DNA of 64,000 bases from the sequence record MT811961.1; one strand, 5' to 3'. Of the stretch, positions 2,306 to 32,807 are shown in pieces (within the stretch, counting starts at the first letter, position 1; the number at the start of each line of letters is the position of its first letter). Made by a program: the position numbers and the translations under genes. The notes below the pieces were generated by a model that saw only the letters and a list, made by a program, of their open reading frames with translations, had not been told where the DNA came from and searched no databases.

Positions 2306-3573
2306 TGGAAATGAAAGATTATATTGGCATTGGTATGGTGTTCATCATCTTTGCTGTTTTTGCTTTGGGCTACATACTTCGAAAAAGCGGCGCTAATGTA
2401 GACAAGAACCATGCAGAGATGAACAAGGCTGCACAGAAGTCTTTAGATAAGATTGAGGCTACAAAGGATGCAAACTATGCCTATATCCGCCGCGTATTAG
2501 ACGAACATATTGTTAACCTGGAACACGGTAAAGAACTGTTCATGGAACTCATCAACATCTCCGGTGTTCGAGACATGTGCCTGTCTTCGGCTTTCCAGAA
2601 GAACGAAATGTATATCTTTGAAGATGATGGCGTGTTTGTTGCGAGACTGCGCTGCGCAGAAAAAGAACACATCGGTGAGCTGTTTGCTATTCTCTTTTAC
2701 CTGCATCAGTTTACAACCATCAAGCTTTTCTTCCATAAGTCCAAAGCCTCTAACAACGATGGCTGGAATCTGGCTACGTGGGAAAAGACGATGCAAGAGA
2801 TGTTATGGGAACTAGGTGATATCTGTCTTGTTGACTTTGAAAAGAAAATACAGGATAAACGGGCTTGTTCGTTCTACCATTTTGTACCAGACAACATCAA
2901 GTCTCCAGTACCTATGGAAATCCATCATGAGTTGTTTGTTCAAACTACATTACCACCGCGTTATGTGGCACATGCAATCACAATGGAATATCAAGGCACG
3001 CCATCTCCTGAAGAAATGGCTACGTACTTTATTGCCGACTACTCTGCCAAAAAGATACACAAGCGAACCCCACTGACTATTGAAGTTGACTTCCAGCAAG
3101 ACGGTGAGGTGCATGTAATCCCACTGGCAGACGGAACAAAAGACGAATACCTCATCGACGATAATGATGATGTTCGTGTTTTAATTCCATCCACAAGTGA
3201 ATTTGGCGAACGTCTGAGTGCATACATGGAAGACACAGCCAGCGAATATTTTGCAGTGCCGCATCATAACACAATGCTAAGTCGTCCTATTCGTCGTCCA
3301 TGGAACTCTGTGGTGTACACACCGGCAGACAAAGATGTGTTGTTCTCTATTACCGAAGACAAGGTACTAGAGCGCTGTGTTCGTGCTGAGGAACTCCTAG
3401 ACCTAAATCAACTCGTAACAGGTGTCTTACCAGACGGCAAACAATTCTACATCAAAGAAGTTGTCCCTGCCTACGTTAAGATCATGGGCGAAGAAACTAA
3501 CTCCTATGCCTTTATTGGCACACTAGGTGAACAACACCCAGTAGCCGAAGTAAGAATCGCCGGCGAAGAATAG
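2305..3573 (+). CDS. Hypothetical membrane-anchored protein (N-terminal TM)
   Basis: 422-aa ORF, TAATG coupling, TM YIGIGMVFIIFAVFALGYIL. Confidence 0.7.
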   Translation: MEMKDYIGIGMVFIIFAVFALGYILRKSGANVDKNHAEMNKAAQKSLDKIEATKDANYAYIRRVLDEHIVNLEHGKELFMELINISGVRDMCLSSAFQKNEMYIFEDDGVFVARLRCAEKEHIGELFAILFYLHQFTTIKLFFHKSKASNNDGWNLATWEKTMQEMLWELGDICLVDFEKKIQDKRACSFYHFVPDNIKSPVPMEIHHELFVQTTLPPRYVAHAITMEYQGTPSPEEMATYFIADYSAKKIHKRTPLTIEVDFQQDGEVHVIPLADGTKDEYLIDDNDDVRVLIPSTSEFGERLSAYMEDTASEYFAVPHHNTMLSRPIRRPWNSVVYTPADKDVLFSITEDKVLERCVRAEELLDLNQLVTGVLPDGKQFYIKEVVPAYVKIMGEETNSYAFIGTLGEQHPVAEVRIAGEE

Positions 3574-3593
3574 TTTCATCGTTTCTTCATTTC

Positions 3594-3601
3594 TATATAA
3601 C
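3594..3601 (+). promoter_or_regulatory. Early promoter core TATATAAC
   Basis: ttcTATATAACcaatgtgaa, matches consensus shared with 9901 and 43750. Confidence 0.7.
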
Positions 3602-3641
3602 CAATGTGAATATTCACGCTAAACCAACAAAGGAGACAATT

Positions 3642-3944
3642 ATGTCTATCAACGTTAAAACTCTATCTGTACTAGCTAAAGACACTAAAGGCAACCACTT
3701 CTTCAAAATCCTAGGTAAGAAAAATGGCAAAGTTACTTTGTCTGTAGCAGCAGATAACGAACTAGGTCTAACTGACATCACAGTTGACGCGTTCAAAGAA
3801 GTGAAAGGTGCGAAAGTTGGTTCTGTTGTTACTGTAACAAAAGACGGCGACGACCTAAGCTTCTCTGTTGAAGCGCCAGAACCAAAAGCTGGTCACCAGC
3901 GCAAAACCACTACTCCAGCAGTACGTGAAACCCTAGCAATCTAA
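3642..3944 (+). CDS. Small beta-rich early protein, unknown function
   Basis: AAGGAG RBS, own promoter and terminator, strongly biased codons (GGT, CTA, AAA). Confidence 0.8.
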   Translation: MSINVKTLSVLAKDTKGNHFFKILGKKNGKVTLSVAADNELGLTDITVDAFKEVKGAKVGSVVTVTKDGDDLSFSVEAPEPKAGHQRKTTTPAVRETLAI

Positions 3945-3952
3945 TTGCATTC

Positions 3953-3994
3953 GCTCCTGCCCCATCTGGGGCGGGAGCTATCATTTTATTTTTT
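3953..3994 (+). terminator. Rho-independent terminator
   Basis: GCTCCTGCCCC-atct-GGGGCGGGAGC followed by T-rich tract. Confidence 0.75.
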
Positions 3995-4015
3995 ATCCTT
4001 TTATCAGGAGCCACA
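3994..4015 (+). repeat. 22-bp leader repeat copy 1 (TATCCTTTTATCAGGAGCCACA)
   Basis: Exact copy at 5137-5158; both contain the AGGAG RBS. Confidence 0.9.
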
Positions 4016-4016
4016 C

Positions 4017-4598
4017 ATGACTACGATATATGCAGTGAACGATTGGATCGGTGCAGATATGAACCACGCACAGTACCTAAACAAACCTCGCTTCGAAGAA
4101 CAAAAGTTAGCATTCTCTAAATTGGATTGCGTTATTCTGGCTATTGGCGGGTGGTCTCGTACCGCAGCCCGTGTTCATACAATAGCAACTTACTTTGAGA
4201 TCATGTTGCTTGCACAATGCTTTGGGTTTGACGATATCCTCGCAAAGGCTAAAACCAAAATCATCGACGATGCGGTAAACGACACGGTCATCGGTCTTTA
4301 TAAACGAGATGGTCGCGTTATTACGTTCTGTTTTGAAGATGAACGATTCGATATTGAGTTTCGTTCTGATGGCGTTGGATATGGAACTGGATTACTTTGT
4401 GCCAAAGCAGAGTATCACCGTCAAGCGATCTTGGATGAGTTCTGTATGGACACCATCATGGAAAAGACAGCAAGACTCGATCCACAAACTTCCGAAAGCT
4501 TTCATACTTACCATGGTGATGGTCTGACTGATTTAGAAAGCATCGAAGTTAAAAAGTTTAAAGAAATCGTTGAAGAATACCTAGGAGAGAAATTATGA
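4017..4598 (+). CDS. Proteasome-beta/HslV-like Ntn hydrolase with N-terminal Thr
   Basis: Starts MTTIY; GAD, QKL, ILAIGG, GYGTG and DPQT..FHT motifs parallel HslV (TTIVS, AGD, K33, AGFAG, AIGSG, YTNHFHT as recalled). Confidence 0.65.
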   Translation: MTTIYAVNDWIGADMNHAQYLNKPRFEEQKLAFSKLDCVILAIGGWSRTAARVHTIATYFEIMLLAQCFGFDDILAKAKTKIIDDAVNDTVIGLYKRDGRVITFCFEDERFDIEFRSDGVGYGTGLLCAKAEYHRQAILDEFCMDTIMEKTARLDPQTSESFHTYHGDGLTDLESIEVKKFKEIVEEYLGEKL

Positions 4599-5128
4599 GT
4601 AAGGGTGCTAACTGGATCGCGATGGTTCGCGACAAACTAATCGTTCCTGCAAAGATGCTGGCTGTTACACCAGACTGTTCACCAACTTCAAGTATGTTAA
4701 AAACAAAGTATGGTTTGGTGTTTCTACAAACCACAGGTGATCTTTCTTACTTTAACCATATGATGGCAGGTGAGTTAGAAAACATGTGTATGTCAGGTGA
4801 ACATTCGCACTGGGGCTTCTGCCTTATCCGCCCAGATGGCAGTGTCATCTTCCGTGCACTGGATCGTCCTACAAAAGACGAGGTACGTGAAACTCAATAC
4901 ATGTTTTATCCAGATCAAGACGTAACACACCTCCTAGGCCACGGTGATCGCATAGCTGCTTTTAATGCAGTAGCAGAAGAGCCATGTCATCGTATCATCA
5001 AGATCATGCGCAACATGTTTCCAGCCGCTGGTGATTGGCATGTGATCGATATCAAACGCAGTGCTGAAAAACTAAAAGACTGCGAACCACTACCACGTAC
5101 AGTTGGCGTTATCCGCAAGCTGTCTTAA
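4595..5128 (+). CDS. Degenerate Ntn-fold paralog lacking the N-terminal Thr
   Basis: ATGA overlap with 4017 gene; CLIRPDGSVIF vs GLYKRDGRVITF, GHGDRIAA vs GYGTGLLCA, TTGD in the AG position. Confidence 0.45.
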   Translation: MSKGANWIAMVRDKLIVPAKMLAVTPDCSPTSSMLKTKYGLVFLQTTGDLSYFNHMMAGELENMCMSGEHSHWGFCLIRPDGSVIFRALDRPTKDEVRETQYMFYPDQDVTHLLGHGDRIAAFNAVAEEPCHRIIKIMRNMFPAAGDWHVIDIKRSAEKLKDCEPLPRTVGVIRKLS

Positions 5129-5136
5129 CGACCAAC

Positions 5137-5158
5137 TATCCTTTTATCAGGAGCCACA
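5137..5158 (+). repeat. 22-bp leader repeat copy 2
   Basis: Identical to 3994-4015. Confidence 0.9.
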
Positions 5159-5160
5159 AT

Positions 5161-5991
5161 ATGAACAACCTAGCACACCGCTTAATTGAAAACGTTAAGC
5201 ACACCGTAGGAACTCCGATTCCTGAAGCCTTTGACCCAGCTAAGAACTTTGGTTCAAAAGAAGTTCTTCCAAAGAAACCATTGGCAGTAAAAGACAAAGA
5301 TTTACAGATGCAGGTCTACCTAACTGCTCGTAATTCTTTCTGGTACTACCTAACCGAGATTGTCCGTGTTAATCGTCTTAGTAGTTCTAGTTACATTCAA
5401 GTAAACTTTGAGGTACTTTACTTTGCAATGGCGGTTCAATTCAACCTTAACTTCTGTAGCCGTAACTTAGATGAAGACGAGCGAGAGTTTTTATTGGCTG
5501 CACGCAGTCAATGGATGGATCTACGTGCAACAAACCAAACCGACTTTGTTTTGCATTCATCTCAAAAGGAAAAAGAAAAGGTCGCCGCTCGTCGCCGTAT
5601 GATGACGGATGCTCGTCCACGTTGGCTGGATGGTGTTCATCCGTTTAATCAGACATATGATGCGATAGGTCAACAAGACCCAGCTCGTGCCGATACCATC
5701 GGTAAGGGCGTATCGATGCAATCAATAGTCATCAACCGCGCAGATAAGGTTAAGAACTTGGACCGCACACTTCGTGACTGTGTACCTGTTTGGAAGACAG
5801 CACAAGAATATGCGAAGAAACAAAACGGCCGTAACCTAACTAACCTAATTGCCTTGTATGAATCACACAAGCAATGGAAGGTTATCAGCCGTGGCTTTGT
5901 GGTAAATGCACGCATGAGTATTGATTTACTCCGCTGGCCTGCTGATGTAATTACAGCCACATCAGAAAACGTACTGTTCACTCGTAACTAG
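5161..5991 (+). CDS. Hypothetical protein
   Basis: 276-aa ORF with AGGAG RBS. Confidence 0.75.
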   Translation: MNNLAHRLIENVKHTVGTPIPEAFDPAKNFGSKEVLPKKPLAVKDKDLQMQVYLTARNSFWYYLTEIVRVNRLSSSSYIQVNFEVLYFAMAVQFNLNFCSRNLDEDEREFLLAARSQWMDLRATNQTDFVLHSSQKEKEKVAARRRMMTDARPRWLDGVHPFNQTYDAIGQQDPARADTIGKGVSMQSIVINRADKVKNLDRTLRDCVPVWKTAQEYAKKQNGRNLTNLIALYESHKQWKVISRGFVVNARMSIDLLRWPADVITATSENVLFTRN

Positions 5992-6001
5992 GAGACTTAC
6001 A

Positions 6002-6697
6002 ATGGACGTAGTAATTTGGACGCTATCTATTATTGCTTGGGTCTGTATCATTCTGGTCGGTGTCGCCAGATATGCCACCATCTACTTTATTGACATGTTC
6101 AACGGCACGCGTGACCTAATCGTTTTGCGTGGCGGTGAATACATTGTCGTTAACGACGGCTACCGTGAATTGCTCAGCAGCAAAGAGAAGCATCGTGAAC
6201 GCTTCCATGGTGAGCAAGTACGTTACGGTGACGATGTGTTGTTCTGGCCAGAAGGCAACTGCATGCGTTGTTTCTGTAGCTATGAGGGCCGCGTATCTAC
6301 CTATCTCTTCCCTGTGGCAGAGTACGAATATCTGGCTGTCTTATTAGAGGGCTGTGATAACCCTGGTTTTACCACAGAACGCTGGATTCGGTTGACTGAC
6401 TCCATCGGCAGAACAATCCGCAACCTGGATTCTTTCGTATCAAAACCAACCGCGCCTTTTCTTACAACTCATGAGATTTCACCACCTAACGATGACTTCG
6501 ACGGTGATGCAATGTCAATGGAGTTCAACAAAGAGACTGGGAGTTTTGAAAATCTAAAAACCGTCAAAGCCGACATCCCTTGTCGGGAATGTGAATTCTC
6601 ACCTGACTCGCTTATCTGGAAAGATGGCGATGTAATCCAACTCACAAAAGAACCTGATCTTAACTTAACGCACCTTGGAACAATCGGAGACTACTAA
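6002..6697 (+). CDS. Hypothetical membrane-anchored protein
   Basis: N-terminal TM VVIWTLSIIAWVCIILVGVA; AGGAG RBS. Confidence 0.7.
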   Translation: MDVVIWTLSIIAWVCIILVGVARYATIYFIDMFNGTRDLIVLRGGEYIVVNDGYRELLSSKEKHRERFHGEQVRYGDDVLFWPEGNCMRCFCSYEGRVSTYLFPVAEYEYLAVLLEGCDNPGFTTERWIRLTDSIGRTIRNLDSFVSKPTAPFLTTHEISPPNDDFDGDAMSMEFNKETGSFENLKTVKADIPCRECEFSPDSLIWKDGDVIQLTKEPDLNLTHLGTIGDY

Positions 6698-6698
6698 G

Positions 6699-7622
6699 AT
6701 GAAAAACAAAATGTTCGAACACAAACAAACTGGTCTTGTTTACCCTGCTACACTAAACGACGAAATCAAGATCTTTGGTTATGACTTTACTCATAACGAA
6801 GACTTTGTTCACATCACTGATCCTCGTAATGAAAGCCTAAGTCACTTTATGCACGCGGTTAACGAGGTAGAGTTTCTGCCTAAGCTCATTACTTTGTTAG
6901 AGGGACAGCAGTTACGTTGTCCGTTTACAGACACATTGGCAGAAGTGATCAGCATGGCAGAGACATCCACGTTTGTTGATATCTGCGGTAACCACAAAGA
7001 GACTCGCAGCATGCCACGTCTGCATGTTCGCTTTACGCGTCCTGATGGCTCATCTTTCGCAGTGAAACACGATTCGGCATGGGCCCTATGGAACATGCGT
7101 CTACCTAGTGGCGAAACTCCATTGGAAGTCATGGAGGACATGAGTGAGTTCTTTGGTTCTCATACTCGCTGCAACATCAAGTTTGATCCAGCTGCAATTC
7201 TAAAGGAAATCAAGTTCTTTAAAGCCCATGAAGAAAAACCAAGCATCGAAGAACTTGTAGATATTCGTGAGCGATTCCGTGGTCTGGGTGTGGTTGAAGG
7301 CCTAACCTTTATCCTGCCAAAAAGCTTACGTCTAAGTAAAACGGTATATGACTCGGTAACACGTCTGTATGAAGTCAAGATGAGCAAGACAGGTACAAAC
7401 GTTATCGAACTACCTATTACGATTGAAGCAAGCTATGCACCTATCTGGGGCCTACAAAAGAACGTCTCTATTAAGTGGGCAGATGGTGTAATTGAGCAAA
7501 TGTCTTGGTCTAGCAATCCTGCACTGAAGGTTACGGACTACGACTTCCTTAAAGCGGTCACGTCGTCTATTGATGACACTTATGGCCATATCGTTTCATT
7601 CGAAATCATTGACGAGGATTAA
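6699..7622 (+). CDS. Hypothetical protein
   Basis: ORF 6675-7622; GGAG RBS favours ATG 6699. Confidence 0.7.
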   Translation: MKNKMFEHKQTGLVYPATLNDEIKIFGYDFTHNEDFVHITDPRNESLSHFMHAVNEVEFLPKLITLLEGQQLRCPFTDTLAEVISMAETSTFVDICGNHKETRSMPRLHVRFTRPDGSSFAVKHDSAWALWNMRLPSGETPLEVMEDMSEFFGSHTRCNIKFDPAAILKEIKFFKAHEEKPSIEELVDIRERFRGLGVVEGLTFILPKSLRLSKTVYDSVTRLYEVKMSKTGTNVIELPITIEASYAPIWGLQKNVSIKWADGVIEQMSWSSNPALKVTDYDFLKAVTSSIDDTYGHIVSFEIIDED

Positions 7623-10762: not shown

Positions 10763-12106
10763 ATGTATCAACTCATCTTAGATCTGTTTGCATTTGCTAA
10801 TGAAAAATTCGTCATGCTTACCACGTGGATCAATACCGTGTCTGGTGGCATGGACTTCCTGTCCGGTATGATCTTTACTGCTCTAGCCACTGCGTCTGGT
10901 TGGGCAGCATACTTCTTTACTAAAACTGTCCCTGGTTCTATTAAGCGCCGCCTGATTGTTAGTTTTACAATTGACCGTGATCAAAACGTCTACAAGTACG
11001 AAGGCTTCGTAGAAAAACTAGAGGCTTTCTCTACGTCTCTCGGTTCTCGTTCGTTTGTGGTAGAACCTAAGTTGTGGGAAGAAGGTCTAAAGACATATGA
11101 TGGTTATCATCTAAATCCAGGTCTAGGCTTCCACTGGTTCTTCTGGAACAAGCGTTTGTTTTGGTACACAATCATGGATCTACCATCAAGCGGTTCAGAG
11201 AAACAAAAGAAGCGTCTTCGTCTAATGACTTATGGTCTTACTGCAAAACCTCTTTACGACTTTGTTGACTACCTTAAAGTTGACGTTGACCGCAAGTGGA
11301 ACTACATCTACGATCACGATAGCAAAGGCTGTATTGCTGGCTCACAGCGTGCGATTCTTCCGCATCTGAATGACCTGTGTCTTAACCCAGAAGTAAAAGC
11401 GTACTTCAATGATCTTGTAGAGAAGTTCCCACAGCGAGTGAAGTTTGCAGAAGAGCATGACATGACTTACAAGTACATTGGTTGTCTATATGGCGAACCT
11501 GGTTCTGGTAAGACGTCGCTTCTGTGTTCTGTTGCTAAGGCAATGGGCATTCGCAACGTAATGACCGTTGACGTATCTGAACTAGAGGGCAATAGTTCAC
11601 TGCGTACTCTATTCAGTTCAAAGCTAAGTGGTGGTGATGTACCTAACTTCTTGATCATCGAAGATATTCATAGTCATGAAGCTTTCTTGAAGCCAGAACA
11701 TCAAAAAGATAGCGGCGAGTTAATTGCAATGGGTCCATCACTAGATGGTCTACTTAACACACTGAATGGTGTTGTTCCACTACACAACACAATTGTGTTT
11801 ATTACCACGAACTACATCGAACGCCTGGATGATGCGATCACTCGTCCTGGTCGTACAACCCATGCAATGGAGCTACCACGCTTGTCTCCTGAAACCGTGA
11901 ATGCGTACATGAAAGACCGCATCGAAGGTTGGGATGACTCTGTCGAAGTACCTTTGCGTGGTTGTGATCTTGGTCAACTACTTGACGGCTCTGACTACAA
12001 GCTAGAAATTGCCAAAGAGATCTACCACAACCTTGTTCCTCAGTTACCTGAGAAACCTGTTTACAACTACCATGAATCAAACAAAATTACATTTGGAGAA
12101 GAATAA
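10763..12106 (+). CDS. BCS1-like membrane-anchored AAA+ ATPase
   Basis: N-terminal TM; BCS1_N-like LNPGLGFHWFFWNKRLFW; Walker A GEPGSGKT; Walker B LIIEDI; SLDGLLNTLNGV; sensor ITTNY; Arg finger AITRPGR. Confidence 0.85.
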   Translation: MYQLILDLFAFANEKFVMLTTWINTVSGGMDFLSGMIFTALATASGWAAYFFTKTVPGSIKRRLIVSFTIDRDQNVYKYEGFVEKLEAFSTSLGSRSFVVEPKLWEEGLKTYDGYHLNPGLGFHWFFWNKRLFWYTIMDLPSSGSEKQKKRLRLMTYGLTAKPLYDFVDYLKVDVDRKWNYIYDHDSKGCIAGSQRAILPHLNDLCLNPEVKAYFNDLVEKFPQRVKFAEEHDMTYKYIGCLYGEPGSGKTSLLCSVAKAMGIRNVMTVDVSELEGNSSLRTLFSSKLSGGDVPNFLIIEDIHSHEAFLKPEHQKDSGELIAMGPSLDGLLNTLNGVVPLHNTIVFITTNYIERLDDAITRPGRTTHAMELPRLSPETVNAYMKDRIEGWDDSVEVPLRGCDLGQLLDGSDYKLEIAKEIYHNLVPQLPEKPVYNYHESNKITFGEE

Positions 12107-18589: not shown

Positions 18590-20533
<1,944 letters not shown>

Positions 20534-24590: not shown

Positions 24591-26879
24591 ATGCTTAACA
24601 TTAACGTTACAAAACGACTAGGTGTACAAGAGAAGTTCACCGAAGATAAAGTAAGTCGTGTTGTTGACTGGGCAGCAGAAGGTCTTTCAGGCGTATCTGC
24701 AAGTGCGGTTATCATGAAGGCGTCTATTGACCTTTATGACGGCATTCCCACTGCTGAGATTCATGAAGCACTAATCATGGCAGCAGTTAGTCTTATTAGC
24801 AAAGATGCACCAGATTACCAAATCTTAGCTGGTCGTCTAAAACTATTCGAAATGCGCAAAGAAGCATTTGGTGGTTTCGAAACTCCGACTATTCGTTCTC
24901 AAGTAGAACGCATGGTAACACTAGGTCGCTATGACCATACTCTTCTAGAACAATACACTCCAGAACAACTGGATGAGCTAGAAACAATTATCGACCACAG
25001 TCGTGACCTTAACCTAGGTTGGGCTGGTATGGCACAGTTACGTGACAAGTACGTCGTACAAGACCGTAACACAGGTGAGATCTTTGAATCTCCACAGTTT
25101 ATCTATCTGTTAGTAGGCGCTACGCTCTTCAGTGCATATCCGCACGACGAGCGCATGAAATACATCCGTAAATTCTACGACGTGACGTCAATGGGTAAGG
25201 TATCACTACCTACTCCAATCATGGCAGGTGTGCGTACTTCACTGCGTCAGTTCTCTTCTTGTGTTGTTATTGAATCGGATGACTCTATCCTGGGTATTGG
25301 TGCAGCAGCTACGGCCATCATGGTTTACGTAGCACAACGCGCTGGCATCGGTCTAAACTTTGGTGCTATCCGTCCTAAAGGTTCTCCTATCCGTGACGGA
25401 AGTGTAACTCACACAGGCGTAGTTCAATACCTTAAAATGTTTGAAGCTGCGACGAACTCTTGTGCACAAGGGGGCATCAGACCAGGCAGTGCCACGGCTT
25501 ACTACCCATTCTTCCACCGAGACGCTCGTGACTTCCTTGTACTGAAGAATAACCGTGGTACTGATGAAACACGTGCCCGTCACCTAGACTACTCTCTTCA
25601 GGGCTCTCGTTTCCTACTAGAGCGTATCCGTGGTGAAATCACTCTGTTCGATACGACACAGATTCCTGAAGTAGTTAAGGCGTTCTTCTCCGATGACTAC
25701 GAAGAATTCAAGCGCTTATACGAAGCAGCTGAGAACAACCCATTGTTGAAAGACACATCGGTTCGTGTTAACACATTAGAGTTCATGACAGAGTTCTTAA
25801 ATGAACGTAGCCAAACAGGTCGTTACTACTGGTTCGATGCCAACCATGTAAACAGTCATGGTCCATTTGACCCTGAGTTTGCTCCTGTACGTCAATCCAA
25901 CCTATGTTTAGAAATTGCATTGCCTACCAAGCCTCTTAAACATAGCGTTCATGACGAAGACGCAGAGATCGCTCTATGTACATTGTCTGCCTTCAACTGG
26001 CTAGAGCTTACCACAGAAGAAGACTTCAAAGAGTGTGCTGATATTGTTGTTCGTGCGCTTGATGAACTTCTGTCTTACCAAGACTACCCATTGGCAGCAG
26101 CCGAGAACTCAGTTAACCTATACCGCCCACTTGGTGTTGGTATCATTAACTATGCTGCTGACATGGCGAAGAACGGTTGGAAGTACGGCGAACAAGAAGC
26201 ACTAGACTACACTCACCGCAAGATGGAAATGATGCAGTACTACTTGATGCGTGCATCTGTTCAAATGGCGAAAGAGTTTGGTCGCTGTGAAGGCTTCAAT
26301 AACTTGCGTTATGCTACTAAAGGCCAAATGGTTATCGATACTTACTGTAAGAACGTTGACCAGTTAACTAGTGAACCACTACACATGGACTGGGAAGGTC
26401 TACGTGCAGACATCGCTAAGCATGGTATTCGCAATGCGACTTTAACGGCACTGATGCCTTCTGAAACTAGTTCTCAGGTATGTGGTGCAACTAACGGCAT
26501 TGAACCACCTCGTCGTGAAGTAACCACTAAGACTTCTAAGTCTGGTCCCCTTAAGCTTGTAGTGCCACTGGATGGTATCAACATCGATGACTATACATAT
26601 GCTTGGGAAATGCCAAACAACGATGGCTATCTGTACACAGTAGCAGTACTTCAGAAGTTTGTCGACCAAACTATCTCGGCTAACACATACTACGTGCCGT
26701 CTCATTACCCGAATGGCAAGGTTCCGGTGAAAGTACTACTTAAAGATCTAGCTACTGCTATTAAACTGGGCATCAAATGCCTTTACTATCACAACACGCA
26801 ACCACAAGGCGAAGATCGTCTAACCATTACGGTTGAAAAAGAAGATGAATCGTGCGCTGGTGGTGGCTGCAAGATCTAA
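24591..26879 (+). CDS. nrdA: Ribonucleoside-diphosphate reductase class Ia, alpha subunit
   Basis: N-terminal ATP cone, SSCV, QSNLCLEI, LCTL, PSETSSQ, LYY pair, C-terminal CAGGGC; no intein or intron. Confidence 0.97.
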   Translation: MLNINVTKRLGVQEKFTEDKVSRVVDWAAEGLSGVSASAVIMKASIDLYDGIPTAEIHEALIMAAVSLISKDAPDYQILAGRLKLFEMRKEAFGGFETPTIRSQVERMVTLGRYDHTLLEQYTPEQLDELETIIDHSRDLNLGWAGMAQLRDKYVVQDRNTGEIFESPQFIYLLVGATLFSAYPHDERMKYIRKFYDVTSMGKVSLPTPIMAGVRTSLRQFSSCVVIESDDSILGIGAAATAIMVYVAQRAGIGLNFGAIRPKGSPIRDGSVTHTGVVQYLKMFEAATNSCAQGGIRPGSATAYYPFFHRDARDFLVLKNNRGTDETRARHLDYSLQGSRFLLERIRGEITLFDTTQIPEVVKAFFSDDYEEFKRLYEAAENNPLLKDTSVRVNTLEFMTEFLNERSQTGRYYWFDANHVNSHGPFDPEFAPVRQSNLCLEIALPTKPLKHSVHDEDAEIALCTLSAFNWLELTTEEDFKECADIVVRALDELLSYQDYPLAAAENSVNLYRPLGVGIINYAADMAKNGWKYGEQEALDYTHRKMEMMQYYLMRASVQMAKEFGRCEGFNNLRYATKGQMVIDTYCKNVDQLTSEPLHMDWEGLRADIAKHGIRNATLTALMPSETSSQVCGATNGIEPPRREVTTKTSKSGPLKLVVPLDGINIDDYTYAWEMPNNDGYLYTVAVLQKFVDQTISANTYYVPSHYPNGKVPVKVLLKDLATAIKLGIKCLYYHNTQPQGEDRLTITVEKEDESCAGGGCKI

Positions 26880-27928: not shown

Positions 27929-29047
27929 ATGGTAGATGTATTTAAGTCAGGCCCAACGGATTACCTTAACCAGCCAATGTTTCTTGGCGATGTGGTAAGT
28001 ACTGCCCGTTATGACGAGCAGACACACCCTGAGTTCGAACGTCTAATCAGTCGACAGCTGGCATTCTTCTGGCGTCCTGAAGAAATTAACGTCACTAAAG
28101 ATCGCCTCGATTATGAACAGATGTCGGACCACGAGCGTTTTATCTTTACTGAAAACTTGAAGTACCAGACGCTATTGGATTCAATTCAAGGCCGTAGTCC
28201 TAACTTGGCTTTCTTGGAACTTACTTCTATTCCTGAATTGGAAACATGGATTGAGACCTGGTCATTCTCCGAGACAATCCACTCTCGTTCATACACACAC
28301 ATTATCCGCAACCTAGTTAACCATCCAGAAGAAATCCTATCTGACATCACGGTTAACCCTGCGATCATTAAACGTGCTGAGTTCTTTACGTCTGCATACA
28401 ACGAATGCATAGACATGAACACCGAACGTCGCAACATCATGAATCGCGGCGAAACTCCAAATGAAGAGTTCATGCATAAGCATCGTTACCATATTCTGAA
28501 AGCATTGGTCACGGTTAACGCTCTAGAAGCAATTGCCTTTTATGTGAGCTTTGCATGTAGCTTCGCCTTTGCAGAAAAGAAAAAGATGCGCGGTAACGGC
28601 AACATCATTCGTTTGATTGCGAGAGATGAGGCCCTCCATCTCAAGGGTACGGAGTACATGCTTAATGTTCTTCGCAAAGCTCCACTATGGAAAGAAGTAT
28701 GGGATGAGAACTACGACGAGTTTCGTGGCATCTTCTTACAAGCGGTTCAAAACGAAGAAGATTGGGCCGACCATCTATTCCAGTATGGTTCATTGATTGG
28801 TCTAAATGCAGACTACATCAAACGCTTTGTTCGCTATATTGCTAACGTGCGCATGTCTACAATCCAAATGGGCATTCCGTTCCCTGAGCAAACAGATAAC
28901 CCACTGCCGTGGATCTTTACATCTGGCTGGCTGAGTTCTGATGCAACACAGGTAGCACCACAAGAAGAAGAAATCACTGACTACCTAACAGGTGACTTAG
29001 ATACCAACGTATCAGAAGACGATCTAGATGACTTAGACTTCGTTTAA
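27929..29047 (+). CDS. nrdB: Ribonucleoside-diphosphate reductase class Ia, beta subunit
   Basis: FFWRPEE, TLLDSIQ, ETIHSRSY (E/H/Tyr radical), LEAIAFYVSF, RDEALH, C-terminal DYL. Confidence 0.97.
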   Translation: MVDVFKSGPTDYLNQPMFLGDVVSTARYDEQTHPEFERLISRQLAFFWRPEEINVTKDRLDYEQMSDHERFIFTENLKYQTLLDSIQGRSPNLAFLELTSIPELETWIETWSFSETIHSRSYTHIIRNLVNHPEEILSDITVNPAIIKRAEFFTSAYNECIDMNTERRNIMNRGETPNEEFMHKHRYHILKALVTVNALEAIAFYVSFACSFAFAEKKKMRGNGNIIRLIARDEALHLKGTEYMLNVLRKAPLWKEVWDENYDEFRGIFLQAVQNEEDWADHLFQYGSLIGLNADYIKRFVRYIANVRMSTIQMGIPFPEQTDNPLPWIFTSGWLSSDATQVAPQEEEITDYLTGDLDTNVSEDDLDDLDFV

Positions 29048-29074
29048 TTTTATAGGCGGTTTGCGCCTTTCTAA

Positions 29075-29109
29075 GGGAGTTAGAATACTGACTCCCACTT
29101 TTATTTTTT
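29075..29109 (+). terminator. Rho-independent terminator
   Basis: GGGAGTTAG-aata-CTGACTCCC plus acttttatttttt. Confidence 0.75.
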
Positions 29110-29123
29110 CTTGGAGATTAATA

Positions 29124-32100
29124 ATGGCTAACAAAGATTTTGTTATTCGTTTAAAGAAAACAGAACGCGAAGGCGGTGAGAATCTTGATTGGGTATTATT
29201 CCCATCGACTAACACCAGCATGCGTCCATCTGTTGTTGAGGCATTTGATCCAGCGAAGGACTACGCAGCAGGTAGCTTTGTTAACCGTGACGGAGCTATT
29301 CTAAAAGCAGCCGTTAGCGTTAAAGCTAAACGCGATCCTTTCTATGGTTCCAATGACAACCTCATTAGCGAAACTCCTACACCTACTATTGATGCACAGA
29401 CTGGCGAGATTGCCAGTGTGTTTACTTTTCCGCGTTATGCGGAAGTTGACCTTGATGTATCTCTTAGTGCTACTGGCGATGCGGTTACAGAAATCGATGT
29501 TGAGGTTTACAACAAGACACGCGATGAAGTAATCGGTCTCATTGAGTTACGTGACCTGTCTACTGTAGCCAAGACAGCTAGCTTTAGTGGCGAGTACATC
29601 GGCATGGCTAACGAAGAGATTGTTCTGCGTGTTGGCCAAACACTGGTTCCTGCTTCTTACCAAGACATCCCGCTTGTCGGCTTTACTGGTACAGTTGATG
29701 CCATTGATGTTAGTGGCGACTACATGGTATTGCTAAACGACAGTCGAACTCCGTTCTTGTCTGGTCCAAATGACTACAACATGACTGATATCTCTGGCGG
29801 TGCTGGTGCTCCTAACTGGGCACAGGTTACGAGCATTGTTGTAGACGGTCAAAATGGCAATGTCTTAGCTGATGCCGCTGGCGTTGGTATGTATCTGCGC
29901 GACTTCGGCACCGGTGACTGGTCAGTAATCACAGATGGCGACCAGCGCTCTGGTCAACAAGTGGTTATTGAAGACAGCGTTATCTACTCCATCGATGGCT
30001 TTGGTTCAGAAGTCTGGATGTATGATAGTGGCACATGGACAGACATCAAGGGTAGTCTAGTTGGTCCAGTTAAGGCAACAATGCTTAATGGCTTGCCGGT
30101 TGTTCTTGATGCGTCAAATGGCCAGCTCTACCAATATGTTCCTGGTAGCGGCTTTGTACAGTTCGGCAATATCTCTACTGGAACCCCACAGAACTTCGCT
30201 GGTGTCAATACTCTGTTTGGTCTCGATGGCACAAACAAGGTTTACTTTGTCTCTACTGACGGTACGATCAAGGTTTATGACCAAGATACCGACCTGATTG
30301 AAGACGTGACCACAACTACCGATGGTACTTTCGGTCTGTTCTTTAAGCGTAACGGCACAGACATTCTTTTGGATACTTCAGCAACACCGAAGTTAGTCGA
30401 GAAAGGTACAGCTGGCTACCCAGTTAACTTTACAGCTGCTGGCGCAGTAATCGGCGAAGAAACCATTACCGTACCTGACGCAGAAACTGGTCCTGAGTTT
30501 GTTGCTGAAGAATGGGTATCTGGTGAAGGCTACGAAGCCTATGTCAATCCTCACAATCCACTAGAGGCTTATGAGGCCGACTCGGTTATCTATGACCAGC
30601 ACGGTGCCCTTTGGTACACAGACAAAGCCCTAGCTACTGGTGCGTTCCGTGATCAAGGTTGGACTCGCATGAATCCAGAAGACGGCATCGAAGTAGGTTA
30701 TGCTTATATCGATCCTAATTCTACTACGGAACAAGCAACAAAGATTACTGGTGCCTTCTGTGATGTTGAGCGAAAAGACTGGCGCATTCCTGAGAACGTA
30801 GAGTCTTTCTGGGATACTACGGACAAGTACTCATTGTTCCAAGATACGCGCGGTACAGTGCCTGTAGAAAAGCCTGGTGATGAAGTTCGCTTTATTGCTG
30901 ACCAGAAAGGTGACAACCACATTGTTTTTGATGTTATTGATGTGCATGGTGTTTATCATGAAGATGAAAACGGCCGTGGCTTTGTAACAATCGACGACAA
31001 GATGAAGAGCATCAAGGTACACAAAGCCGGCAGTACTGATAACTACCATCTGCGCATGGCGGTTCCAAATGTGGGCATGCTGCGTTCCGATACGCTTGAC
31101 CTGGAGACTGGCTTCTCTATTAAAGCTTCTCCTAAGTCAAACCAACCTATCTGTCAATTAGCTCTTGTACCAGACGGTACTGATCCAGTTACTCTGGCTG
31201 AACTAGATGCACAAATGCGACGCATTGCCGATCGCTATGCATTCGAAACACTGACTGACCTGAACTACTTCTTCTCTGAACCAGACACGAAGTATGTTTT
31301 TGATGGTGACTATTCATTCCGCTTCATTACTTCTATGCGCGGCATGTATCGTTATGCAGAAGTACCTCAAGACATCTCTGGCTTTGACGTTAGCAAGATT
31401 GTTGACATGGGTGAAATGTTTGAAGGCGCTACTGGTACGATCGATATCTCTAAATGGGACACCTCAAGCGTTCAATTCATGGATGCCATGTTCCGTCGCA
31501 TGGGTGCTTTCAATGCGTCTCTTGTAGACATCGACGTTTCAAATGTTGTTACTACCGAAGGTATGTTTGAAGCGAACACGAGCTTTAACCAAGACATCAG
31601 CGGTCTAGCATGGACTAAGCTAAGCAATGCACGACGCATGTTTGCAGAGTCTACGGTTTATGACACGCCAATTGCATCATTAAATGCCCCAGTACTAAAC
31701 GACATCTCTGGCATGTTTGAAAGTGCACAGGTTTACAACCAAGTATTCTCGGTTAACCTGCCGCTACTATCGACGGCCAAAGGTCTATTTAAGTCTGCCC
31801 CATTGATGACGCAAGCAGTATCAATTACATCCAGTGTACTTACTGACGTTGGCGAGATGTTTGCTTATGCGGCACTATTCAATGCTCCTGTTTCTATTGC
31901 TGCAACAACATTGGAAACAACACAGGGCATGTTCTATCAAGCGCCAGTGTTTAACTCCACGCTATCGATGGATTTCTCTAGTGTTAAGACAGCAACCGAA
32001 ATGTTTGCTGGTGCTGCCGCGTTTGACGTAGCTCTTGGTCTTGTTCCTCAGTCACTCGAGTATGCTAACCGTATGTTCTCTGGTGCTCTTGCAATGACAG

Positions 32101-32807
32101 CGAATCCATTTGCTTCCTATGTCTTCCCGCGTTTGATTGAAGGCGAAGAGATGTTTGACGGGGCGAGTTTGTTGACTGGTGGCGTGGCATTTGCAGCGCC
32201 AAATGCTCTTAAAGTCAAAGCAATGTTCCGTGGGTGCGCGGCCTTAACTGGCCCTGTTACATTCTCTGCGACCATTGCCGAAAGTCTAGAAGAGTTGTTT
32301 AAGAACTGTACTGCCCTTGATGAACCCGTTAATATCAGCGCGCGTCAAGCGTTGAATGTAAACGAACTCTTTATGGGTTGTGCTTCTCTGGCGAGTGACC
32401 TTGTAGTTTATGTGCCGATTGCAACAAGCGCCAAGTCTTTCTTGCAGGGCGCTGTGCTGTTTAACAATGCATTGCAAATCACCTCAACAATGTTTACTGA
32501 TATGTCTAGCTTCTTTGAAGGCTGTACGTCATACAACCAACCAATCGACATCGATATGGCTCTGGCTGAAAACTGTACTAACTTCCTTAAAGACGCTACG
32601 TCGTTCAACAATAGCGTTTTGGATGTACCGTTTAACTACATCAAAGTAATCGATGGCTTCTTGGCCGACTGTACTTCATTCGATCAAGACCTATCTTCTC
32701 TTTGCGTTACAAACCACCATGTACAGCCTACTGACTTTGTTACAGCAAATGTACCAATGTCACAGGATGCGGCGAAACAGCCAGCATGGGGCAAGCTCTG
32801 CGCTTAA
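29124..32807 (+). CDS. Large modular tail-fibre/adhesin-like protein with C-terminal DUF285 (BspA-like) repeats
   Basis: GGAG RBS before ATG 29124; FDPAKDYAAG module, propeller-like middle, LFQDTRGTVPV...DQKG phage-tail motif, about 20 repeats of type xxTSxVxxMxxMFxxAxxFNxxL. Confidence 0.75.
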   Translation: MANKDFVIRLKKTEREGGENLDWVLFPSTNTSMRPSVVEAFDPAKDYAAGSFVNRDGAILKAAVSVKAKRDPFYGSNDNLISETPTPTIDAQTGEIASVFTFPRYAEVDLDVSLSATGDAVTEIDVEVYNKTRDEVIGLIELRDLSTVAKTASFSGEYIGMANEEIVLRVGQTLVPASYQDIPLVGFTGTVDAIDVSGDYMVLLNDSRTPFLSGPNDYNMTDISGGAGAPNWAQVTSIVVDGQNGNVLADAAGVGMYLRDFGTGDWSVITDGDQRSGQQVVIEDSVIYSIDGFGSEVWMYDSGTWTDIKGSLVGPVKATMLNGLPVVLDASNGQLYQYVPGSGFVQFGNISTGTPQNFAGVNTLFGLDGTNKVYFVSTDGTIKVYDQDTDLIEDVTTTTDGTFGLFFKRNGTDILLDTSATPKLVEKGTAGYPVNFTAAGAVIGEETITVPDAETGPEFVAEEWVSGEGYEAYVNPHNPLEAYEADSVIYDQHGALWYTDKALATGAFRDQGWTRMNPEDGIEVGYAYIDPNSTTEQATKITGAFCDVERKDWRIPENVESFWDTTDKYSLFQDTRGTVPVEKPGDEVRFIADQKGDNHIVFDVIDVHGVYHEDENGRGFVTIDDKMKSIKVHKAGSTDNYHLRMAVPNVGMLRSDTLDLETGFSIKASPKSNQPICQLALVPDGTDPVTLAELDAQMRRIADRYAFETLTDLNYFFSEPDTKYVFDGDYSFRFITSMRGMYRYAEVPQDISGFDVSKIVDMGEMFEGATGTIDISKWDTSSVQFMDAMFRRMGAFNASLVDIDVSNVVTTEGMFEANTSFNQDISGLAWTKLSNARRMFAESTVYDTPIASLNAPVLNDISGMFESAQVYNQVFSVNLPLLSTAKGLFKSAPLMTQAVSITSSVLTDVGEMFAYAALFNAPVSIAATTLETTQGMFYQAPVFNSTLSMDFSSVKTATEMFAGAAAFDVALGLVPQSLEYANRMFSGALAMTANPFASYVFPRLIEGEEMFDGASLLTGGVAFAAPNALKVKAMFRGCAALTGPVTFSATIAESLEELFKNCTALDEPVNISARQALNVNELFMGCASLASDLVVYVPIATSAKSFLQGAVLFNNALQITSTMFTDMSSFFEGCTSYNQPIDIDMALAENCTNFLKDATSFNNSVLDVPFNYIKVIDGFLADCTSFDQDLSSLCVTNHHVQPTDFVTANVPMSQDAAKQPAWGKLCA

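Follow-up and report, generated by a model that had tools for sequence, protein, structure and literature searches.

A predicted divergent HslV-type peptidase gene and its conserved, tightly coupled partner gene in the Vibrio jumbo phage vB_pir03

The window analysed here comprises the final 64 kb of the genome of Vibrio jumbo phage vB_pir03 (MT811961.1, 286,284 bp; hereafter pir03), positions 3000–7000 of the window corresponding to positions 225284–229284 of the record with 100% identity. It contains two overlapping forward-strand genes: A (4017–4598), predicted to encode a divergent HslV-type N-terminal-threonine peptidase of 193 aa, and B (4595–5128), encoding a partner protein of 177 aa with no fold match in the PDB. 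The initial annotation had read both open reading frames, the M-T-T-I amino terminus of A and the ATGA overlap that joins the genes, and all of these are borne out; A and B are annotated coding sequences (CDS) in the GenBank record, where their product, like that of all genes around the pair, is given as 'hypothetical protein'. B is preceded by a GGAG of its own. Upstream on the same strand lie a small annotated CDS of 100 aa, gene C (3642–3944), then a terminator- or attenuator-like stem-loop with a T-rich run (3953–3994, identified in a terminator scan), and finally the 19-nt element CCTTTTATCAGGAGCCACA (3997–4015), which includes the Shine-Dalgarno sequence of A. The element is repeated exactly before the next gene (5140–5158), giving two exact matches in 64 kb compared to 0.01 expected.

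The genes surrounding the pair form a non-structural block (HAD-like, AAA, ligase, RNR), and the prohead protease, a separate T4-like enzyme (PMC7765460), is encoded elsewhere in the pir03 genome. HMM searches of the whole genome revealed no second copy of either A or B. Gene D (5161–5991) was considered as a fourth member of the module and rejected, being conserved only in subsets of loci. The counterparts of C, A, B and D in phage BONAISHI (AXH70986–AXH70989) are uncited in the pir03 genome paper (PMC7765460), which suggests that its table of annotated ORFs does not include the four genes. Phage C-ZP2022 is 99.7% identical to vB_pir03.

AlphaFold2 models were built for A and B, each on an alignment of only nine sequences. 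The model of A (pLDDT 91.7, pTM 0.88) has the predicted fold of an alpha-beta-beta-alpha Ntn sandwich, and its comparison with the PDB using Foldseek returned HslV and 20S proteasome beta subunits with probability 1.0 and TM 0.5–0.65 (341 matches at E ≤ 1e-3). The top matches include the HslV structures of E. coli, T. brucei, S. aureus, B. anthracis and T. maritima, and the 50 matches listed are to HslV and 20S beta specifically, with no other Ntn hydrolases among them. The parallel with HslV drawn from the raw sequence thus holds for the modelled structure.

At the level of primary sequence the link between A and HslV is weak but specific. The pir03 protein has no match to Pfam (PF00227) or phrog_1040 at E ≤ 10, no HslV-family match in NCBIfam (TIGR03692/NF003964) at E ≤ 1 and no match in a direct search of PDB sequences, and PF00227 matches none of the nine Vibrio-type members of the A family. 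A profile of 13 A sequences searched against PDB sequences has HslV as its top 7 of 8 matches, aligned over nearly the full length with a best E of only 0.023. The phage family phrog_1040 ('peptidase HslV family') is reached only transitively: hhalign aligns the Vibrio A profile with A-like proteins of Erwinia and Salmonella phages over the full length (E 1.5e-11), and the Erwinia proteins in turn match phrog_1040 at 3e-24 and 7.5e-10.

Relatives of A are few. When 1.84 billion representatives were searched exhaustively with phmmer, only seven were recovered, which together with pir03 A and one further sequence from a Logan contig make up the nine Vibrio-type members; a word-indexed search of 5.8 billion proteins recovered only A itself, and two scans of IMG/VR gave no matches. 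The addition of four homologues from Erwinia and Salmonella phages produced the set of 13 sequences, which display 17–34% identity to pir03 A (17–22% for those four). Ten columns are nevertheless invariant across the set (M1, T2, T3, D14, K30, G123, G125, A129, D155 and L170). Alignment with MAFFT places M1-T2-T3, D14, K30 and G123-T124-G125 of A onto M1-T2-T3, D18, K34 and G124-S125-G126 of E. coli HslV (gene numbering), equivalent in the mature enzyme to Thr1, Asp17, Lys33 and the Gly-Ser-Gly loop (Ser129). D155 likewise falls on an Asp in HslV, and all nine Vibrio-type sequences have Ser or Thr at position 158. The catalytic-type residues of A comprise Thr2 (Thr1 once Met is removed), D14, K30, G45, G123-T124-G125, D155 and T158. 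The MTT start is found in every member of the family, Vibrio-type and Erwinia-type alike; the one apparent exception, L010, is a miscalled start, with ATG-ACT-ACC-ATC present in the DNA 15 nt upstream. The motifs named in A by the initial annotation (Thr1, Asp, Lys and G-T-G, with their HslV parallel) are therefore far above chance, being invariant at 17–34% identity and aligned to HslV.

Removal of Met before Thr is an established specificity of methionine aminopeptidase. By analogy with HslV, the host enzyme would cut off Met1 of A and expose Thr as the N-terminal nucleophile, while D14, K30 and the G-T-G loop would complete the active site. Together the model and the alignments support the assignment of A as an HslV/proteasome-beta-like Ntn hydrolase with a full catalytic set and no propeptide, and we conclude that it is a new and very divergent member of the phage HslV-like peptidases whose catalytic apparatus is intact.

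The retention of these residues bears on the alternative that A is no protease in vivo, serving instead as a decoy that binds and sequesters host HslU or as another Ntn-type amidohydrolase whose substrate is not a protein. On its own, HslV shows very low activity when HslU is absent, and pir03 lacks a phage ATPase of this kind (see below), both of which would suit such a role. However a pure decoy would not need T1, D, K and G-T-G to be kept down to 17% identity, and the restriction of the fold matches to HslV and 20S beta, among the 50 listed, also argues against this alternative. We consider this alternative highly improbable.

Bacterial HslV (ClpQ) is the best structural match of A and resembles it in the M-T-T-I start (as in E. 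coli hslV) without a propeptide, in the 16-residue spacing of Asp and Lys, in the Gly-(Ser/Thr)-Gly loop and broadly in size (176 aa compared to 193 aa for A). It differs in that A displays less than 20% identity to it with no PF00227 or TIGR03692 match, has a first hairpin four residues shorter, Thr in place of Ser in the G-S-G loop and an extra C-terminal helix, and is coupled to the unrelated gene B instead of to hslU, which is missing from the pir03 genome. The phrog_1040 peptidases of phages (Derbicus gp123, Machina and Huxley gp125, pSal-SNUABM-04 ORF116) are full-length homologues of A that share its MTT start, D14, Lys, G-(S/T)-G and IDPxS; a B-like gene comes after them too, and a C-like gene and a hairpin lie upstream in Derbicus and Phobos. 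In contrast to these, the Vibrio family has no phrog_1040 match, is 'hypothetical' in GenBank and has no accompanying HslU-like ATPase in pir03. Canonical HslV was also sought in phages using tblastn, and the matches were short unannotated or bacterial-looking records rather than true phage genes.

The 20S proteasome shares with modelled A its beta-subunit fold and active-site residues, and its pairing of catalytic with non-catalytic genes is formally similar, although B is not detectably of the alpha/beta fold and A has no propeptide. Anbu and BPH are stand-alone bacterial proteasome-like Thr peptidases without an obvious dedicated unfoldase, as is A in pir03. Both rank below HslV as matches to A (Anbu, PDB entry 5nyg, is at rank 45 in the Foldseek matches), and to our knowledge neither has a B-like partner gene.

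Relatives of B are known only beside relatives of A. Nine Vibrio-type B sequences were gathered; a word-indexed search of 5.8 billion proteins found three relatives, and searches of Pfam, PHROGs, NCBIfam and PDB sequences gave chance-level matches only. Two of these, to proteasome beta subunits (E 0.4–1.2), were rejected as the wrong region of the subunit was aligned. The AlphaFold2 model of B is confident (pLDDT 87.2, pTM 0.85), and its best Foldseek match in the PDB has an E of 0.31, with no proteasome, HslV or other Ntn protein among the 50 matches listed. This top match is the FP domain of Fbxo7/PI31, which at a TM of 0.2 was taken as chance. Searched against BFVD, the model matches 182-aa uncharacterised proteins of the Erwinia phages Derbicus and Huxley (probability 1.0, TM 0.5–0.65). 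Derbicus gp124 and Huxley gp126 are unnamed proteins of 182 aa encoded directly downstream of the HslV-like genes (gp123 and gp125, respectively), and from their length and phage of origin the BFVD matches are probably these proteins. A few unnamed viral proteins in BFVD are matched as well. The Vibrio and Erwinia B families are collinear over 132 columns in hhalign (P 1.5e-4), the identity between pir03 B and the B-like proteins of Erwinia and Salmonella phages being 10–18%, and direct PHROG HMM searches matched none of the Vibrio B proteins. From its BFVD and hhalign matches to the Erwinia partner proteins, B is therefore a member of an ancient partner family (phrog_8172, phrog_25529).

The initial annotation had gone further, proposing that B repeats the scaffold motifs of A in a Thr-less form and that the pair follows the active beta/inactive alpha logic of a proteasome. 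Taken to its conclusion, B would be a degenerate Ntn paralogue of A, and the two would form hetero-oligomeric rings of active beta-like and inactive alpha-like subunits, a self-contained viral mini-proteasome. The lack of Thr1 in B is real: the family has no conserved N-terminal Thr, an invariant Pro (P18) takes the place of D14 of A, and no Lys is conserved. The N-terminal extension attributed to B exists insofar as some residues are present, but these number only 3–6 ahead of the first strand. The paired motifs (RPDGSVIF with KRDGRVITF, GHG with GTG) are indeed put in register by hhalign, but with scores at chance level for the two families (P 0.14 with 9+9 sequences, 0.03 with 14+14), and BLASTP of A against B gives an E of 7.3.

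Several further observations would suit such a paralogue, including the similar size of B and A, the tight coupling of their genes and the fall in P from 0.14 to 0.03 as sequences were added. In the merged families, hhalign working from sequence only aligns A 90–164 with B 73–151, with seven successive elements in register and DSSP states that agree at 57 of 70 positions, although this agreement is a weak test because sliding offsets reached as many as 54 of 70 (mean 25). The order of elements in the B model is that of A and HslV (hairpin, two short strands, S3, S4, helix, S5–S8, two helices, S9), save that helix H1 is halved and H2 is absent, and one helical layer of the alpha-beta-beta-alpha sandwich is therefore largely missing. 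Against a paralogue stands also the failure of a confident model to find any Ntn match among the 50 PDB matches listed (best E 0.31, TM about 0.2) compared to 341 matches for A, and profiles of the B family find similarity neither to HslV nor to A-like proteins. An Ntn fold for B is thus unsupported and the active beta/inactive alpha logic is, for that reason, still conjectural; the fold of B is either new or an Ntn fold too degenerate for recognition, and that B is a Thr-less Ntn protein we think improbable. We regard the hetero-oligomeric mini-proteasome as doubtful. A broader proposal, that A and B constitute a two-subunit, virus-specific compartmentalised protease in which B is either a degenerate Ntn ring subunit or a new-fold cap replacing the need for HslU (an ATPase-independent or host-ATPase-hijacking 'mini-proteasome'), is also unlikely in our estimation.

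The coupling of A and B is tight, and the two stay adjacent wherever relatives were found: the pair occurs in all 14 loci, drawn from two distant jumbo-phage lineages, so that the conserved adjacency looked for in other jumbo phages extends to a second lineage. An overlap of 1–11 nt joins the two genes in 12 of the 14 loci, a gap of 2 nt separates them in the remaining two, and in most loci a GGAG-type site precedes B inside the end of A. Within the module the order is C, hairpin and T-run, A, B. C-A-B order is seen in all Vibrio-type loci, and C-like, A-like and B-like genes occur in Derbicus and Phobos; Huxley, Machina and Salmonella phage pSal-SNUABM-04 (ORF116/117) likewise carry an A-like gene paired with a B-like one.

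Gene C has a homologue at the same position in 10 of 10 Vibrio-type loci, with a conserved C-terminal K-(S/T)-(S/T)-T-P motif. It is homologous to Derbicus gp122 (hhalign E 1.7e-5) and has no matches in Pfam, NCBIfam or PHROG. A 194-aa gene upstream of the A-like gene in Machina-type phages was considered as its counterpart and rejected, as hhalign finds no match between the two. The hairpin between C and A in pir03 is a GC-rich 11-bp stem-loop (3953–3978) followed by the T-rich run, the C-A spacer having a predicted folding energy of −28.1 kcal/mol (RNAfold), and a GC-rich hairpin of 10–14 bp with a T-run and then a Shine-Dalgarno sequence precedes A in the spacer of each of the 14 loci. The position of this hairpin suggests that C may be expressed at a level above A and B, which would be reached by read-through.

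Coupling and co-inheritance are no proof of a physical complex. A product or substrate of A might be the target of B, or B might serve as an inhibitor or immunity-like partner. In the Erwinia and Salmonella phages an HslU-like ATPase is encoded 1–2 kb downstream of the A-B pair (e.g. Derbicus gp129, which matches Pfam AAA_2; the 'heat shock protein' of Machina and Huxley; and pSal ORF121, annotated as DnaA). In the whole pir03 genome, tblastn with E. coli HslU, Derbicus gp129 and RAY gp116 found nothing significant, and no canonical HslV was found by the same method; the published annotation likewise contains no HslU-like ATPase (PMC7765460). The sole AAA+ gene found near the pair encodes a forward-strand BCS1-like ATPase of 447 aa (10763–12106; Pfam AAA 1.3e-14, BCS1_N 1.1e-6), whose hydrophobic N-terminus suggests a membrane protein. 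It is homologous to Derbicus gp119 (BLASTP 4e-25), whose gene is found 1.2 kb upstream of the HslV-like gene in Derbicus, and any link between this ATPase and A-B is speculative. Erwinia phage RAY gp116, at one point a candidate homologue of A, is an HslU-like ATPase with neighbours (gp117, gp118) unrelated to A and B. It has been reported as nuclear-localised (bioRxiv 10.1101/2023.02.24.529968), and since it is not a homologue of A, no localisation data carry over.

The lack of an HslU-like ATPase in pir03 makes use of the host ATPase plausible, and it could be argued that A is an ordinary HslV replacement working on host HslU, with B having no part in the particle and being, for instance, an inhibitor, a safety partner of the antitoxin kind or an effector in its own right that happens to share the operon. 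This would be in keeping with the absence of detectable similarity between B and known protease subunits or adaptors. However, B-like genes follow A-like genes even in phages with an HslU-like ATPase of their own, and the pairing has survived the divergence of B to 10–18% identity, with overlapping stop and start codons in 12 of 14 loci. Linkage kept at such divergence is typical of genes whose products physically interact, and we judge a role for B outside the particle to be distinctly unlikely.

The explanation we favour, to which we assign a probability of roughly 0.6, is that A is an HslV-type peptidase and B its coupled, non-catalytic partner in an ancestral HslVU-type module. A would assemble, as HslV does, into stacked rings enclosing the active sites. 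B, presumably translated from the mRNA of A via the overlapping stop and start and inherited together with it, would most likely belong to the A particle as a stoichiometric, non-catalytic subunit or else regulate it (as a cap, gate, adaptor or assembly factor). The module of C, hairpin and T-run, A and B would be older than the split of the pir03/BONAISHI/sm033 Vibrio phages from the Machina/Derbicus phages of Erwinia and Salmonella. Because the Machina/Derbicus phages have an HslU-like ATPase so close downstream, the ancestral system has the appearance of an ATP-dependent phage protease of the HslVU type that included one additional subunit. The ATPase may have been lost by pir03, or never have been there, and activation would presumably be provided by host HslU or by B itself. 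Given the non-structural neighbourhood of the pair and the existence of a separate prohead protease, A-B probably serves to break down proteins of the host or the phage inside infected cells, and capsid processing is the less likely role.

A few dozen phage genomes already have genes annotated as HslV-family peptidases. Such genes appear in the literature as annotations only (PMC7823757) and are not mentioned in a broad survey of jumbo phages (PMC7824862), and we found no functional study of phage HslV-family peptidases in the searchable literature; looking there for proteasome-like proteins encoded by phages gave a single paper, on an Alteromonas phage tail-fibre chaperone. To this the present analysis adds a previously unrecognised, very divergent HslV-family branch in Vibrio jumbo phages. 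It also shows that the A-homologous branch (phrog_23394 type and Derbicus type) is always accompanied by a coupled partner gene, in two distant jumbo-phage lineages, and that this partner persists with or without a phage HslU-like ATPase. The catalytic half of the pair is supported, as is the weight that the initial annotation gave to the pairing, and the Thr-less Ntn partner is unproven, with the conserved partnership being the new part. If A and B do form a complex, this would represent a new threonine protease architecture and would provide a concrete starting point for finding out what jumbo phages break down in the cells they infect; were it a two-subunit mini-proteasome, the particle could remove host defence or regulatory proteins.

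The members of the gene A family, to which the divergent HslV-type peptidase of vB_pir03 (4017–4598) belongs, share a common N-terminus once the start of a single homologue is corrected. P0011, the homologue encoded on JGI contig Ga0480401_0000097 (L010), has an annotated start lying 15 nt too far downstream (L010:4986–5000); the 15 nt upstream of the called start read ATG-ACT-ACC-ATC-GTA, giving an MTTIV N-terminus that P0011 then has in common with every other A-family member.

A second HslV-like type, which belongs to phrog_1040 (the phage 'peptidase HslV family'), also begins with MTTI, is shorter (157 aa) and stands alone. It is found in the Salmonella phage pSal-SNUABM-04 (MT710307.1, 1–474) and in 62 other phage records, and is widespread, occurring in SPN3US-like phages, Erwinia phages and Klebsiella phages of approximately 49 kb. 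In pSal-SNUABM-04 the gene that follows it encodes 112 aa and is not of the size of gene B, the partner that overlaps gene A. Machina-type phages carry both the stand-alone type and the A-like type. Every close match to canonical Escherichia coli HslV in the 'phages' collection was either a short 'phage' record lacking annotation or a bacterial contig (Salmonella, Listeria, Enterococcus and Staphylococcus), and these look like host DNA submitted as phage.

In Machina-type phages the A-like gene is preceded by a gene encoding 194 aa (Huxley gp124, L016:1361–1945), with counterparts in Machina and pSal-SNUABM-04 (ORF115). Inspected by eye, the protein appears to contain a small beta-rich domain duplicated in tandem, and it terminates ...GATPN..., which is similar to the C-terminal (S/T)TP motif of Derbicus gp122 and of gene C, the small gene upstream of the A–B pair (3642–3944); alignment to the gene C family with hhalign gave no significant match. 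A further gene of pSal-SNUABM-04, ORF121 (MT710307.1, 106144–107877), matches the HslU-like ATPase of Derbicus in two pieces at 50% identity, and its annotation as 'putative DnaA protein' is probably wrong. The public BFVD model of gene B (A0A7G8AMJ1, 100% identical in sequence) superposed poorly on our MSA-based model (TM 0.33), and is probably unreliable.

Other recognizable genes in the window encode a HAD_SAK_2 phosphatase-like protein (1517–2305), an NAD-dependent DNA ligase (18596–20533), the large and small subunits of a class I ribonucleotide reductase (24591–26879 and 27929–29047) and a protein of 1248 aa that contains five DUF285 repeats (29061–32807); a giant DUF285 protein likewise lies close to the A–B pair on contig L009. 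The AAA ATPase encoded at 10763–12106 has a hydrophobic N-terminus and a BCS1_N + AAA architecture, with phrog_7485 (function unknown) as its top PHROG match, and is unlikely to be a clamp loader.

Gene A and the next gene, which starts at 5161, each have a perfect copy of one 19-nt sequence, CCTTTTATCAGGAGCCACA, directly before the start codon (3997–4015 and 5140–5158, respectively). These two copies are the only ones in the 64-kb window, where 0.01 would be expected by chance. The repeat may represent a common ribosome-binding or regulatory element, or else a local duplication.
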